NCBI RefSeq assembly: GCF_006345805.1
Contig: NW_021835043.1
Location: 1 to 44,661, forward strand
DNA from: Octopus sinensis
Taxonomy: Eukaryota
Length of the DNA: 44,661 nucleotides
Direction of reading: 5' to 3'
In this document: positions 11,001 through 29,000 of the stretch, piece after piece
Position numbering within the stretch: position 1 is the stretch's first letter
Layout of the letters: each line of letters opens with the position of its first letter
The notes under the pieces: generated by a model
Told to the model about the DNA's origin: nothing
Database searches by the model: none
The model's input: the letters and a program-made list of their open reading frames with translations, nothing else
Position numbers and translations under genes: made by a program

Positions 11001-14000
11001 TATGTATGTGTGCATGTATGTGTGTGTGTGTATGTATGTATATATGCATGTATGTGTGTGTATGTATGTATGCATGTGTGTATGTGTGTATGTATGTATG
11101 CATGTGTGTATGTGTGTATGTATGTATGTATGTAAGTATGTATGTGTGTATGTGTGTGTGTATGTATGTATGTATGTATGTGTGTGTGTATGTATGTATG
11201 TATGTATGTATGTATGTAAGTATGTATGTGTGTATGTGTGTGTATGTATGTATATATGTATGTATGTATGTATGTATGTATGTTGTATGTATGTATGTAT
11301 GTATGTAGTATGTATGTATGTATGTATGTATGTATGTATGTATGTATGTATGCATGTATGTGTGTATGTATGTATGCATGTGTGTATGTATGTATGTATG
11401 TATGTATGTATGCATGTATGTATGTATGTATGTGTGTATGTGTTTGTGTGTATGTATGTATGTGTGTGTGTGTGTATGTATGTATGTATGTATGTATGTG
11501 TGTATGTGTGTATGTATGTATGTATGTATGTCGTTATTCAGTTTTATTTCAAGGTTTCTTGCCAACAGAAGGAGGACCCGTTTCTAACCTAGATCCAAGG
11601 CTCCTTCAGTGGAATTTCAACACCAACAGGGTTTTTGCATGTATGTGTGTACATGTGTAGTATTTGAAGTCCTTGCATGTGCAGATTTGCATGTTTTTTT
11701 TTATATATGTATTTTCGCATGCATATAGCTACATGTCTAGACATGCTCATATATACTCAAATGATAAACTTCTGGAAAATTTTACAGATCTTTACAGTTC
11801 CAGCGATTGCTCGAATCAGCTTTTTCTTCCCTGGTTCTAAGAAGCATAATTTCTCAAGATTGATATTTAGACTATCTATCTATCCACTCAGTCGAAGTCG
11901 ACTCTCGGTTACTCGATGGATCAGTGTCCTCCAGTCAGTTCTATCCTGGGCCGCTTCTTTCAGATTGGCTATGTCCATTCCGGTATCACTCTTGATGGTG
12001 TCAAGCCAGCAGGTTCTTGGTCGGCCTCTTCCTCTCTTGCCACTGACCATTCCGAGCATATGTCCTTCTCCAGGGATTTTCTCCGCATAATATATATATA
12101 TATATATATATATCCGCTCAGTCGAAGTCGACTTTCGGTTATTCGATGGATCAGTGTCCTCCAGTCAGTTCTATCCTGGGCCGCTTCTTTCAGATTGGCT
12201 ATGTCCATTCCGGTATCACTCTTGATGGTGTCAAGCCAGCGGGTTCTTGGTCGGCCCCTTCCTCTCTTGCCACTGACCATTCCGAGCATGATGTCCTTCT
12301 CCAGGGATTTTCTCCGCATAATATGACCTCTGGCCTGGGGAAAGACCTCACCACCTACCCCAGTATCCTGGCCAATATACTCTATGGATATTTAGGCATG
12401 TTACGATAATTACAGTAATCACCCCAATAATTACAGGTATAAGCCTGAACTTGTAATTTGGGTTGAGTAAGGGCAGATCTTTCAGTAGTTCAGTGTAGGT
12501 ATTTTGTTTTTCTCTGATCTTTAGCTTCGTGTTAACATCTGCAGGGTATCTGATTTCCACCACTCTACACAATTTCATTTTTCTCTGTCCAAAAATCTAC
12601 ATCAGGTCTATGTCAGGTCTTTTATTGAGGTTTTCACTGAGACATTCCACCAGTAATCCATATTATGAGTAGCAGTGGGCTCTACCACAGGGTGGGTTCA
12701 TATTTCTTTGGCCTTAGGGTTATCCTTCTGACGGATCTCATTATACAGTGCCCTAGCTACAACATGTCTTATCAGTATATAATACTGCGATGACATTTTC
12801 AGACAACTGCTTATGATGTGGGTGATATCTTTGGACTTCAGTCCACAAAGTCTGCACCGGTTATCATATTTTGGCATTTTGCCTTCATCTCTGTGTGGTA
12901 AGTAGCTTGCTTACGAACCACATGGTTCTGGGTTAAGTCCCACTGCGTGGAACCTTGGGCATGTGTCTTCTACTATAGCCCTGCGTTGACCAAACCCTTG
13001 TGAGTGGATTTGGTTGACGGAAACTGAAAGAAGCCCGTCGTATATATGTATGTGTGTGTATATGTTTGTGCGTCTGTGTTTGTCCCCCCCCAACATCGCT
13101 TGACAACCAATGCTGGTGTGTTTACGTCCCCGAAACTTAGCGGTTCGGCAAAAGAGACCGATAGAATAAGTACTAGGCTTACAAAGAATAAGTCCTGGGG
13201 TCGATTTGCTCGACTAAAGGCGGTGCTCCAGCATGGCCGCAGTCAAATTACTGAAACAAGTAAAAAAGAGAGTAAAAGAGACGTATGCCGATATTTATCG
13301 TTATTTATCACTGCTATTCTGGAGTCGAGGCTAAAGCAGAAGACACTTTCCCAAGGTGCCACGCAGTGGGACTGAACCCGGAACCATGTGGTTGGTAAGC
13401 AAGCTACTTACCACACAGCCACTCAATTTTTAAAAGAAAATGAAGTAGCTTACCTGCTGGGCTTATGGAGATGTTGTAGGAAGAATTGTCACAGGCAGAG
13501 GAGTTGAGATTACATCGTTTCTCGGGAAGGACAGTAAGGAAAAGCGGATCGAGTACTGATTTTTTTTCAACAAATAATTTCCCTGGCTGATTATCAGTTG
13601 CCAAAGTCTTGTGGTCGTAGTCGGCTTCATTGGGATGACTGTTGTGAATTGAAGCGTACACAGTGACCACAGCGTACTGGACACTCACCTGCAGAAAATA
13701 ACAACAGACATAATATACAGAGTGACCACACCACACTGGACACTCACCTGGAGAAAATAACAACAGATATGATATACAGAGTGACAACACCACACTGGAC
13801 ATTCACCTGGAGAAAATAACAACAGATATAATATACAGAGTGACCACACCACACTGGACATTCACCTGGAGAAAATAACAACAGATATAATATACAGAGT
13901 GACCACACCACACTGGACACTCACCTGCACAAAATAACAACAGATATAATATACAGAGTGACCACACCACACTGGACATTCACCTGGAGAAAATAACAAC

Positions 14001-26000: not shown

Positions 26001-29000
26001 TCTTTTCGGAACTAGCTCTTTTTGCAGTCCAGCTCCCCCAAAGCAAAAACCCTCCTCATCACACATTCTATATCTAAGAAGGTTTACGGGCACTGCCCCC
26101 TTTCTCAGTCATCCATAAAAATAGAAAAAAAAAAGAAAAAAAAAGAAGCAAAATTCAATAGACGTTGTTCTAGAATATTCGTCTTACCAGAACCGTTGTG
26201 TCCAAGGTAGAATTTGCACCGCTGGAGAACTGCAGAACTTGTTTTGTTTCGTTACTGTTTGGAATGGTGAATGAGAGAAACTGAGTGTCTTCGGAGATGA
26301 CGATCGGGGCTGGAATCAGAAAGGGGCATTTAAAAAGGCACAGCATAGCAGTGATAAAATATGGGCATGTGTGTATACTTTTAAATATATATATATATAT
26401 ATTGTTTTTTGTATTTTATATTCGTGTGGCATCGTCCGTTTTTCTGTCCCTGTTTCGTATACATTCGATCCTTCTTCCAAGGAATCTAATGCTCGTAGGT
26501 TAGTTTTTCCTTGGGGCTGGCCGGATGGGAGCGATCTCAAGATTAATCGGCCGAAATTGCTAGGATGATCCGGTTCTTGACTGAAGATTGAAGGCTTCGA
26601 AGTCCCGTCCGTGTTTTTTGTATCGTCTTCTAAATGTTTTACGTTCTTGTCCCAGTTTGTATTTTTCTACATATAATATATATATATATATATATATATA
26701 TATATATAATAATAAATTCAGTATATAATATTCTCATTGTATATATTTAACTAAAGATTTTCGTCCTTGTTTTGCATGCATTCGAGGCTTCTTCCAAGGA
26801 ATCTAATGCGCTTGGCTTAGATTTTCCTTTGGGGCTGGCCGGATCGGAGCTATCTCAAGATTAATCGGCCGAAATTGCTAGGATGATCCGGTTCTTGACT
26901 GAAGATTGAAGGCTTCGAATGTCCCGTCCGTGTTTTTTGTATCGTCTTCTAAATGTTTTACGTTCTTGTCCCAGTTTGTATTTTTCTACATATAATATAT
27001 ATATATATATATATATATATATATAAATTCAGTATATAATATTCTCATTGTATATATTTAACTAAAGATTTTCGTCCTTGTTTTGCATGCATTCGAGGCT
27101 TTCTTCCAAGGAATCTAATGCGCTTGGCTTAGATTTTCCTTTGGGGCTGGCCGGATCGGAGCTATCTCAAGATTAATCGGCCGAAATTGCTAGGATGATC
27201 CGGTTCTTGACTGAAGATTGAAGGCTTCGAATGTCCCGTCCGTGTTTTTTGTATCGTCTTCTAAATGTTTTACGTTCTTGTCCCAGTTTGTATTTTTCTA
27301 CATAATATATATATATATATTATATATATACTATATATATATATATATAAATTCAGTATATAATATTCTCATTGTATATATTTAACTAAAGATTTTCGTC
27401 CTTGTTTTGCATGCATTCGAGGCTTTCTTCCAAGGAATCTAATGCGCTTGGCTTAGATTTTCCTTTGGGGCTGGCCGGATGGGAGCGATCTCAAGATTAA
27501 TCGGCCGAAATTGCTAGGATGATCCGGTTCTTGACTGAAGATTGAAGGCTTCGAATGTCCCGTCCGTGTTTTTTGTATCGTCTTCTAAATGTCTTACGTT
27601 CTTGTCCCAGTTTGTATTTTTCTACATATAATATATATATATATATATATATATATATATGTACAAAATTTAAAGGACTGACACTAAAACTGGACGGCCA
27701 ACATGCTAGATATAGACGTCAAATCGCTATTTTACACAAAGAATATGTTCTCAAATAAAAAAACTCAACACAAACCAAAGCATTAAAAATAAGCAAGACA
27801 AATGAAAATATACGAAATAAAAGCAATTTTGACGTCTATTTCTAGCATGTTGACCGTCCACTTTCAGTGGTCAGTCCTTTAAATTTTGTATGTAAAAAAA
27901 TTTTAATCTTCCGATTTTTTTTAATATGCTAGGCCACTGGTTTTAATTGATTAATATCGATTTCTACCCTTATTCAATTCTCTCTCTCTATATATAAACG
28001 TTTGTGTATATATATAGTTATATATATTATATATATATATATATATATATATATATATATATATATAGATATATATATATTAATATATATATATATATAT
28101 ATATAATTATATTATATATATAGGCGTAGGAGTGGCTGTGAGGTAAGTAGCTTGCTTACCAACCACATGGTTCCGGGTTCAGTCCCACTACTTGGCACCT
28201 TGGGCAAGTGTCTTCTACTATAGCCTTGGCCCGACCAAAGCCTTGTGAGTGAATTTATAGACCGAAACTGAAAGAAGCCCATCATATATATATTATATAT
28301 ATATATATATATATATATATATATATATATATATATATATATATATATATATATATATATATATATATATATATATATATATAATATATATATATATATA
28401 TATATATATATATATATATAGGTGTAGGAGTGGCTGCGTGGTAAGTAGCTTGCTTACGAACCACATGGTTCCGGGTTCAGTCCTACTGCGTGGCACCTTG
28501 GGCAAGTGTCTTCTACTATAGCCTCGGCCCGACCAAAGCCTTGTAAGTGGATTTGGTAGACGGAAACTGAAAGAAGCCCGTCGTATATATGTATACATAT
28601 ATATATATATATATACGTGTGTGTGTGTGTGTATGTTTGTGTGTCTGTGTTTGTCCCCCCAACATCGCGTTACAACCGATGCTGGTATGTTTACGTCCCC
28701 GTTACTTAGCGGTTCGGCAAAAGAGACCGATAGAATAAGTACTGGGCTTACAAAGAATAAGTCCCGGGGTCGATTTGCTCGACTAAAGGCGGTGCTCCAG
28801 CATGGTCGCAGTCAAATGACTGAAACAAGTAAAAGAGCAAAAGAGTATATATATATATATATATATATATATATATACTCTTTTGCTCTTTTACTTGTAT
28901 ATATATATACATGCATGAAGAATACATAAGGAATATATATACATACATAAAGAGTAGTGAAGGCGCATGCCTCAGTGGTTAGAGCGTCGAGCAGTTAGAC

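Follow-up and report, generated by a model that had tools for sequence, protein, structure and literature searches.

A 204-unit array of splice acceptors fused to donor-like sequence in an octopus intron looks like a by-product of duplication at its own 3′ boundary

How does an intron come to consist almost entirely of copies of its own 3′ splice site, and how might such an intron be removed? The question is raised by the window analyzed here, a 44,661-nt stretch of Octopus sinensis DNA (NW_021835043.1), which carries on its minus strand a VWA-domain gene from a family of secreted proteins with this domain that is specific to octopuses. The choice of the spliceosome among look-alike sites is usually studied in artificial constructs. 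Here, octopus sister genes from two species carry from one to ~200 copies of a used acceptor, each adjoining a donor-like sequence.

We placed six exons in the window by tblastn with family proteins (exons 1-6 beginning at ~38705, ~32084, ~30713, ~26309, ~13688, and ~5009), which agrees with the numbering of exon 4, intron 4, and exon 5 in an earlier note on this DNA. The features are as follows, with a slash marking splice junctions throughout:

38478..38705, minus strand: exon 1, placed by tblastn, with a start codon and a signal-peptide-like N-terminus
31796..32084, minus strand: exon 2, from tblastn, sequence, and a splice check
30157..30713, minus strand: exon 3, coding for the VWA domain, from the Pfam match, length relative to paralogs, and alignment
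26188..26309, minus strand: exon 4, 122 nt, from sequence, translation, tblastn with P0001/P0002, and alignment with five paralog copies
25650..26187, minus strand: unique 5′ part of intron 4, 538 nt, from sequence and the homologous flank in paralogs L001, L002, and L003
25591..25649, minus strand: unit 1 of the array, GTGAGTACCCAGGTTGGTGTTGTCACTGTG..., the oldest and most diverged, 88% identical to the consensus
13689..25590, minus strand: units 2-204, a 59-nt satellite with consensus GTGAATGTCCAGTGTGGTGTGGTCACTCTGTATATTATATCTGTTGTTATTTTCTCCAG
13454..13688, minus strand: exon 5, 235 nt, with donor CAG/gtaagc at its end
4906..5009, minus strand: exon 6, the last, from tblastn and a splice check, coding for a hydrophobic C-terminus and then a stop

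Exon 4 ends in ...GGTTCTG in phase 0 with donor CTG/gtaaga (boundary at 26188, ...ACAACGGTTCTG/gtaaga), and exon 5 begins with GTGAGTGTCCAGTACGCT (VSVQYA...). A second copy of exon 1 lies at ~40352-40120, within a tandem duplication of 1,647 bp.

The array occupies 11,961 of the 12,499 nt of intron 4 on the minus strand, bearing out the earlier estimate of ~12.0 of 12.5 kb. Its ~200 units of 59 nt were recovered both by Tandem Repeats Finder (13657-25635, period 59, 203.3 copies, 90% matches) and by wrap-around alignment on the sense (minus) strand, which resolved 204 full head-to-tail units from 25649 down to 13689. The copy that follows unit 204 is the start of exon 5 itself, at 13688. The first 33 nt of that exon match unit positions 1-33, confirming that the last repeat is the real acceptor. 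Positions 1-33 thus copy the exon start and code for VNVQCGVVT(L/V)Y, the family consensus, while positions 34-59 are the 26 nt of pyrimidine tract plus CAG. Units are ~96% identical to the consensus, with an exact match in only 25 of the 204, and they show an ordered pattern of variants, duplicated blocks, and unique flanks on both sides. The array is therefore an intronic minisatellite by definition, being made of head-to-tail units of 10-100 nt within an intron and varying in copy number among related loci. Upstream, the unique part of the intron contains a (CTA)n microsatellite (25768-25996) and ends with an older, diverged acceptor copy, ccctttttgctttttccctcag (~25650-25671), similar to the single-copy acceptor of L006, a distant Octopus vulgaris paralog. 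When compared with the first units of L001, L002, and L003, unit 1 proved to be the counterpart of the single pseudo-unit in two-copy paralogs.

Most junctions between units have the form that the earlier note ascribed to every one of them, CAG/GTGART, but not all do. Both AG and GT are intact at 184 of 204 junctions (~90%), most commonly as CAG/GTGAAT with the tract TCTGTTGTTATTTTCTCCAG upstream, and the acceptor AG is kept in 95% of units. Among the donor-like hexamers, 175 are GTGAAT, 8 are GTGAGT, and 21 have another sequence. An acceptor with pyrimidine tract and AG is thus fused to a donor GT, as in recursive splice sites, and the tblastn-based gene model places this one AGGT per unit in a tandem repeat inside a gene, as in dual-specific repeats. 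Joining exon 4 to a unit would rebuild a CTG/GTGART donor, as the earlier note pointed out (by sequence, CTG/GTGAAT in 175 units and CTG/GTGAGT in 8). The dominant GTGAAT is without the consensus G at +5, and its competitor 59 nt downstream, CAG/GTGAAT, shares that hexamer but follows a better exonic sequence (CAG vs. CTG). The unit consensus contains no YTRAY branch point, again in line with the earlier observation, and two weaker UnAy-type candidates were read by eye: GUCAC, whose A lies 34 nt before the AG, and AUUAU, whose A lies 22 nt before it. Because the unit of 59 nt is not a multiple of 3, it cannot be kept or removed in frame as the units of coding dual-site repeats are; in translation, a single unit retained after exon 4 would lead to a stop after 20 codons (...IFSR, then stop).

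Related loci record how the array arose. There is one copy of the boundary in L006, two copies each (one pseudo-unit plus the exon) in L002 and L003 of O. sinensis, and ~14 units in L001, also of O. sinensis. Large arrays are found in L004 (94 units) and in copies A, B, and C of L005 (52, 74, and 150 units), and the window consensus recurs in five other arrays. The comparison with other octopods that the earlier note had called for gave arrays in O. vulgaris at the same intron position and with the same consensus, although copy number differs between apparent O. sinensis and O. vulgaris orthologs (94 vs. 52 units). Because relatives carry 1, 2, ~14, and 52-150 copies, the array is a family trait grown from the exon-5 boundary, which supports the origin proposed in the earlier note. 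The unduplicated and once-duplicated states occur in relatives at this same boundary, as is expected where an intron has been extended. We suggest that the series began with an exon whose first codons, Val-Ser/Asn (GTG AGT / GTG AAT), resembled a 5′ splice site by chance. A 59-nt tandem duplication that took in 26 nt of intron end (pyrimidine tract plus CAG) and 33 nt of exon start would then have created a second complete acceptor adjoining GTGAGT, and later unequal exchange would have expanded it to 14, to 52-150, and, in the window, to 204 units. Since the duplication would have spanned the end of the intron and the start of the exon, the AG/GT junction was probably inherited by descent rather than purpose-built.

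If the junctions were nonetheless maintained for splicing, they should be conserved above the flanking intron sequence, as recursive sites are; they were not, either in the window or in four large paralog arrays. Across the 204 window units, AG and GT positions diverge by 2.5-4.9% against a mean of 3.8% (rank 28-45 of 59), so AG/GT shows no conservation beyond that of the unit as a whole. In the four paralog arrays, averaged, positions 59, 58, 56, and 57 (the acceptor CCAG) are the four most variable. The acceptor AG is kept in 76%, 75%, 53%, and 44% of their units vs. 95% in the window and is absent from the other 24-56%; these arrays were grouped as intact paralogs by annotated coding sequence, with the exons of L005 copy B only partly mapped. 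The AG-killing allele that dominates differs from array to array (CCAT, CCAA, CTGG, and CTGT). This excess variability at the acceptor comes from three or four independent amplification events, and chance or a local mutation bias could account for it; a random pair of positions would rank first and second with p ~6e-4, or ~0.02 for an adjacent pair. GT (unit positions 1-2) is nearly invariant in the same four arrays, which would fit a retained donor or U1-binding function. Still, this is weak evidence because recent homogenization leaves most unit positions there invariant.

The explanation we consider probable, given these patterns, is that the array is an intronic minisatellite born from the exon boundary and skipped by exon definition, with its internal copies acting as costly decoys. 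Because only the last copy precedes a real 235-nt exon with a consensus donor (CAG/GTAAGC), the whole array would be removed as an intron. Annotation is consistent with this: the intact 514-aa protein P0021 is 98-100% identical to the L004 exons on either side of the 94-unit array, so in the annotation exon 4 is followed directly by the terminal copy. The annotated proteins with this join are gene models, and no transcript-derived proteins were among the matches in protein searches. Internal copies would serve as decoy acceptors whose use leads to a stop codon, and such RNAs would therefore be occasionally re-spliced from CTG/GTGAAT or lost to nonsense-mediated decay. Speaking against this explanation, some re-splicing is likely, since human cells are documented to process dual sites stochastically and in several steps (PMC10809524). 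If the explanation holds, decoys would be a cost rather than a benefit, and the spread of AG-destroying variants in the arrays of intact paralogs may reflect selection against them.

The state of the window gene copy also bears on how the array should be read. A 1-nt deletion between 30353 and 30352 shifts the frame of exon 3, giving a premature TAG at 30339-30337 and an aligned exon length of 557 nt vs. 558 or 561 nt in four paralogs. The frameshift splits the VWA domain (Pfam PF00092, above the gathering score in exon 3) between two matches, one with E=1.3e-32 (profile positions 1-115) and one with 6.9e-07 (positions 122-171). In exon 5, a family-invariant Cys has become Tyr, one of 13 changes unique to the window copy at positions invariant in seven paralog copies; other copies have 0-5 such changes. 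The best database proteins are at most 86% identical to the window product. However, the domain evolves fast throughout the family (dN/dS 0.5-0.9), so divergence alone is no proof of a pseudogene, and the exon-3 frameshift could be an assembly error. Because the frameshift is combined with loss of the conserved cysteine, the window copy is probably decaying and looks inactivated. We note that this apparently inactivated copy holds the largest array, with nearly all acceptors intact.

The earlier note had proposed a possible recursive ratchet, in which exon 4 is spliced to any of ~180 decoy acceptors (~200 by the count of the note) and the regenerated CTG/GTGART donor is reused, so that mis-splicing corrects itself and 200 units are tolerated. 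Units with intact AG are indeed full copies of the acceptor of the real exon with GT adjoining, and joining exon 4 to them rebuilds CTG/GTGAAT or CTG/GTGAGT. Moreover, arrays of 52-150 units with almost invariant GT coexist with intact annotated proteins, and dual-specific AGGT sites in a tandem repeat work both ways in human UBC (PMC10809524). Yet we think the ratchet unlikely. Genuine ratchet points exceed their flanks in conservation (10.1101/006163), whereas AG/GT in the window does not rise above background and, within the unit, variability in paralog arrays peaks at the acceptor core. The regenerated donor is without G at +5 in 175 of 204 units, and, judged by sequence, the donor 59 nt downstream is no worse, so by the donor-competition rule of Drosophila (PMC8605326), under which the ratchet donor out-competes that of the cryptic exon, a 59-nt cryptic exon with a stop would be kept and no correction would follow. 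The correct junction of exon 4 with exon 5 regenerates a stronger donor, CTG/GTGAGT, so exon 5 too would tend to be spliced out if the ratchet were efficient, and the host gene in the window is frameshifted. The sequence evidence therefore leans against a maintained ratchet and toward the neutral alternative that the earlier note had itself offered, a plain minisatellite. A looser version, in which introns with 50-200 copies of acceptors fused to donor-like GT are processed through many stochastic dual-use splice events and the repeated spread of AG-destroying variants with retention of GT is a visible signature of selection acting on the decoy load, seems to us slightly more plausible than the ratchet but still doubtful.

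The array could also act at the RNA level without being spliced internally. In such a scenario, ~180 U1-type (GUGAAU) sites, together with pyrimidine tracts and GU-rich tracts (UGUGGUGUGG), would serve as landing sites for U1, U2AF, PTB, or GU-binding repressors, slowing splicing, retaining the transcript, or shielding the long intron from premature cleavage, and copy number would tune paralog expression. This would accommodate the persistence of the array in at least five paralog copies and two species, the invariance of GT while AG is lost, the GU-rich tract directly after the donor-like site in each unit, and a modest predicted inter-unit structure (z = -3). We nevertheless judge it very unlikely because copy number is very different in close relatives, as for an unconstrained minisatellite, and one-copy and two-copy paralogs manage without an array. 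Less probable again is that the length of the array, or its presence in intron 4, comes from a mis-assembled repeat. Twelve kilobases of 59-mers this similar are hard to assemble, and the exon-3 frameshift shows that indel errors may occur in the window sequence. However, independently assembled genomes of both O. sinensis (four contigs) and O. vulgaris (three gene copies) carry the array at this same place in the intron, and the window array itself has ordered internal variants, duplicated blocks, and unique flanks on both sides. Overall, the minisatellite looks like a tolerated or mildly harmful by-product, and a stepwise-splicing device is not proven.

Most likely, the array is a by-product and sits in a gene copy that is decaying; in that case the window is of modest weight in itself and the family comparison is what deserves attention. 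The locus records the stepwise growth of an intron by 12 kb from its own 3′ boundary. Should dual-use processing be true, the paralogs would form a natural graded series (1, 2, 14, 52, 74, 94, 150, and 204 copies) for spliceosome choice. Showing how RNA from these arrays is handled would measure the tolerance of decoys, the balance of exon definition and re-splicing, and the fitness cost implied by acceptor erosion.

The earlier note knew of no tandem array of this kind, but arrays of dual-specific AGGT splice sites have been published for human UBC and VCX3A, together with 77 human introns with lengths that are multiples of the surrounding repeat, and their expansion was argued to be tolerated since it can be removed by splicing (Duan et al., Genome Biol 2024, PMC10809524). 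The octopus arrays share one AG/GT per unit, units that could in principle be removed as an intron, and a fast-evolving copy number. By contrast, the arrays of Duan et al. are coding repeats whose unit length is divisible by 3 (228 nt in UBC), with ~8-9 copies and both uses seen by RT-PCR, whereas the octopus arrays have 59-nt units that are non-coding in context, number 52-204 copies inside one intron, derive from a real intron/exon boundary, and would give a stop codon if a unit were retained.

Recursive sites, described as ratchet points in Drosophila and RS-exons in vertebrates (Duff et al., 10.1101/006163; Joseph et al., PMC8605326; Blazquez et al., PMC6224609), likewise join a strong acceptor to a donor-like GT and regenerate a donor on ligation to the upstream exon, and octopus exon 5 (GTGAGT...) is built like an annotated RS-exon. 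However, ratchet points are isolated sites within very long introns, with conservation exceeding that of their flanks and a donor that beats that of the cryptic exon. The octopus sites are 59 nt apart, are not preferentially conserved, have an acceptor that is eroding in paralogs, and would regenerate a donor without G at +5 whose competitor looks equal or better by sequence.

Tandem duplication of a segment that contains AGGT is also known as a route to the gain or extension of introns (Hellsten et al. 2011, PMC3265369; potato RdRp, PMC4974935). As in those cases, the octopus duplication provides a ready GT...AG pair that splicing could remove, and relatives show intermediate copy numbers. 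The known cases made a new intron from exon sequence in a single duplication, whereas here an existing intron was lengthened from its 3′ end by a duplication repeated ~200 times. With ordinary intronic minisatellites (VNTRs), the array shares head-to-tail units of tens of nucleotides, homogenization, higher-order blocks, and a copy number that varies by paralog and species. It differs from them in that its unit is a complete, usable 3′ splice-site module plus the start of an exon, which makes each copy a potential decoy.

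The array lies in intron 4 of a minus-strand gene, and the intron is phase 0 on both sides, at the end of exon 4 and at the start of exon 5. By exhaustive protein search, we matched the peptide of exons 4 and 5 to a family of octopus VWA-domain proteins (P0001, P0002, and others) with members known from three species, Octopus sinensis, O. vulgaris, and O. bimaculoides. Family proteins then served as tblastn queries to locate six exons in the window.

Exons and array boundaries of the window gene (exons by tblastn with family proteins; splice boundaries and array start read from the sequence)
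38705-38478, minus strand: exon 1
32084-31796, minus strand: exon 2
30713-30157, minus strand: exon 3, VWA domain (Pfam E=1.3e-32)
26309-26188, minus strand: exon 4, with 3' end ...ACAACGGTTCTG|gtaaga at 26188
Between exon 4 and the array, minus strand: unique intron 4 stretch of 538 nt
25649, minus strand: array start, cctcag|GTGAGTACCC...
Within the array, minus strand: internal units, beginning GTGAATGTCCAG
13688-13454, minus strand: exon 5, starting at 13688 as ttctgcag|GTGAGTGTCCAGTACGCT..., which the array abuts without a break, and ending as CAG|gtaagc at 13454
5009-4906, minus strand: exon 6

No domains were detected in exons 4 and 5 against Pfam. The closest database protein to the window gene is P0021, at 86% identity, and word-index and exhaustive searches returned none nearer. 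The window locus differs from both L004, the O. sinensis locus encoding P0021, and L005, an O. vulgaris locus (OX597840.1, 8.07-8.18 Mb) where one of the three gene copies is inverted. We note that annotated P0002 (837 aa) is a fusion of two neighboring L005 paralogs, running from exon 4 of the first straight into exon 2 of the second.

Tandem Repeats Finder reported one array at 13657-25635 (period 59, 203 copies, 90% matches), and wrap-around alignment to the consensus GTGAATGTCCAGTGTGGTGTGGTCACTCTGTATATTATATCTGTTGTTATTTTCTCCAG on the minus strand gave 204 full units. Unit boundaries were set by this alignment; regex-based cutting missed units. Divergence averages 3.8% per position, and 25 of the 204 units are identical to the consensus. 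The earlier note had described an intron filled with units that start like a donor and end like an acceptor. This structure was correct, but its claim that every junction reads CAG|GTGART was too strong: of 204 junctions, 184 (about 90%) retain both AG and GT. Among the 204 units, 175 carry GTGAAT as the donor-like hexamer and 8 carry GTGAGT, and the five real donors of the gene are all of the GTAAG type. The exon following intron 4 starts V[SNKG]VQCGVVTVY in all family members, and the array consensus encodes VNVQCGVVT(L/V)Y, equal to the family consensus with the invariant cysteine included. Only short ORFs were found, with stops in every unit, and we rejected a coding or plus-strand role for the array. 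RNA structure able to hide the junctions gave only a modest signal (z = -3).

Other repeats are also present in these genes. In the unique stretch of intron 4, a (CTA)n/(TAG)n microsatellite occupies 229 bp (25768-25996), and paralogs have no more than a few TAG triplets at the corresponding site. In intron 5, a (TATG)n microsatellite extends over 1.1 kb, with about 281 copies (window 10418-11531). Exon 1 lies in a segment of about 1,647 bp that is tandemly duplicated (window 37754-41036, 98.7% identity), which gives the gene two candidate first exons, at 38705 and 40352; the upstream copy aligns in two pieces by tblastn. Short tandem arrays of a 183-184-nt element (GTCGACTTTGCCTTTCATCCTTTCGGGGTCGATAAA...), which looks like a SINE-like or satellite genome repeat, occur in many introns of the VWA gene family (window 44-580 and 29411-30041; L001 2385-5458, with up to 17 copies; L006 12560-13140).

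Related loci carry the boundary in very different copy numbers. In L006, a distant paralog from O. vulgaris, the boundary is present once, as catttttgttcttcccag|GTGAGTATCCAGTGTGG, which indicates that an exon start with donor-like GTGAGT is ancestral. Two O. sinensis loci, L002 and L003, have one diverged pseudo-unit flanked by an older acceptor and the real acceptor. There are about 14 units in L001 (O. sinensis), where a transposon insertion splits the array, about 94 in L004, whose 514-aa protein P0021 is intact, and about 52, 74, and 150 in the three adjacent copies of L005. The 59-nt consensus of the window is common to the L001, L004, and L005 arrays. Within the window, unit 1 matches the old pseudo-unit of the two-copy loci L002 and L003, the pyrimidine tract upstream of it matches their older acceptor, and units 2-204 are of exon-type sequence (CAGTGTGGTGTGG). 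The exon-5 states G5, G28, and TACGCT cluster at the exon-proximal end, and multi-unit blocks recur within the array. The copy-number series, shared consensus, and block recurrence agree with the origin inferred in the earlier note, by amplification of the acceptor and exon start, and they support growth of the array by repeated duplication of this segment. Judged from these sequences, the array is a trait of the entire gene family.

Additional observations concern exchange and rearrangement. The variant CAGTACGCT, specific to the exon and lacking the conserved cysteine, is found at the exon 5 start (13688) and also in internal units 191 and 199 (at 14514 and 14042), which suggests that the exon start and the array have exchanged sequence. 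An old, diverged unit type (GTGAGTACCCAATTTGGTGCGG...) is last or next-to-last before the real exon in L004 and in copies A and B of L005, but lies at the far 5' end of the window array, indicating that arrays were rearranged differently between paralogs. At L001, the terminal copy (12579-12602) encodes VSVRCGRV, yet the annotated NCBI protein P0014 opens exon 5 with VNVQCGVV. These eight residues fit an internal GTGAAT unit of L001 rather than its terminal copy, which excludes canonical splicing as the source of P0014. The mismatch may reflect conversion of the exon start by the array in one allele, or an artefact of alignment within the repeat.

Ratchet points are conserved beyond their flanks (10.1101/006163). 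In the window, AG|GT is not preferentially maintained, as divergence at the four junction positions is 2.5-4.9% (ranks 28-45 of 59). Averaged over the four large paralog arrays, the most variable unit positions are 59, 58, 56, and 57, the acceptor core CCAG, and GT is almost invariant, as are most other positions. This pattern is the opposite of the conserved-ratchet prediction. Acceptor-killing alleles have been amplified (CCAT in L004 and L005-A, CCAA in L005-B, CTGG and CTGT in L005-C), and 14 AG-less units run directly upstream of the real acceptor in L005-C. The acceptor AG is kept in 76%, 75%, 53%, and 44% of units in the four paralog arrays, compared to 95% in the window, and AG and GT are both present in 71/94, 39/52, 39/74, and 66/149 units, compared to about 183/201. 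The chance of a random position pair ranking first and second is about 6e-4, or about 0.02 for an adjacent pair, but because there were few independent events, we take the pattern as suggestive evidence of selection against decoy acceptors in functional gene copies.

Unless an assembly error produced its frameshift, the window's own gene copy has probably become a pseudogene or is evolving under relaxed constraint. At 557 nt, exon 3 is shorter than in four paralogs (558 or 561 nt). It has a 1-nt deletion in the VWA domain, between 30353 and 30352, which leads to a stop at 30339-30337 (minus strand); the deletion is either genuine and inactivating or an indel introduced in assembly. Relative to paralogs, exon 4 shows strong divergence and lacks 3 nt. 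Exon 5 carries 13 unique substitutions, cysteine included, at sites invariant in seven paralog copies, compared to 0-5 unique changes in other copies. This count replaced dN/dS as our pseudogene test, as dN/dS is uninformative in a family that lies at 0.5-0.9 throughout. Decay or relaxation would explain why the largest array, with decoys nearly all intact, occurs here.

Every AG-intact unit is a complete copy of the real exon's acceptor module, so decoy use is plausible. In translation, exon 4 joined to a unit reads through 20 codons and then a TGA spanning the next junction, and a single unit kept ahead of exon 5 also brings a TGA stop. The regenerated donor, CTG|GTGAAT, is without the consensus G at +5, and a rival donor lying 59 nt further downstream shares this hexamer but sits in a better context, CAG| (strengths were compared qualitatively, against the gene's own splice sites). 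In Drosophila, recursive splicing needs a cryptic exon and donor competition sets the outcome (PMC8605326). Under the Drosophila rules (PMC8605326, 10.1101/006163), the array sequence makes trapping of a 59-nt cryptic exon as likely as the self-correction by re-splicing that had been proposed. Moreover, the correct exon 4-exon 5 junction regenerates a stronger donor, CTG|GTGAGT, making exon 5 an RS-exon of the annotated kind, and annotated RS-exons of this form are repressed by the exon junction complex (PMC6224609). An efficient ratchet would therefore endanger exon 5 itself. Re-splicing at dual-specific sites is documented in human cells (PMC10809524), and occasional re-splicing in the array would be compatible with the sequence evidence. 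Still, that evidence disfavors a recursive mechanism as a maintained function.

The literature search yielded zero papers linking octopus and recursive splicing. The earlier note's belief that no tandem array of this kind had been described does not hold. Duan et al. 2024 (PMC10809524), the closest precedent, describe dual-specific AGGT sites in tandem arrays in UBC and VCX3A, report that intron lengths equal to a multiple of a surrounding repeat are 8.4-fold overrepresented, and argue explicitly that expansions are less harmful because they are spliceable. The value of the octopus array lies in its family-wide copy-number series, a natural test of splice-site choice. Its origin fits intron gain via tandem duplication of an AGGT-containing segment (PMC3265369, PMC4974935). 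Five features set the array apart from known cases: an intronic location, a 59-nt unit that is not a multiple of 3, derivation from a true 3' boundary, a copy number as high as 200, and recurrence among paralogs with visible acceptor erosion.
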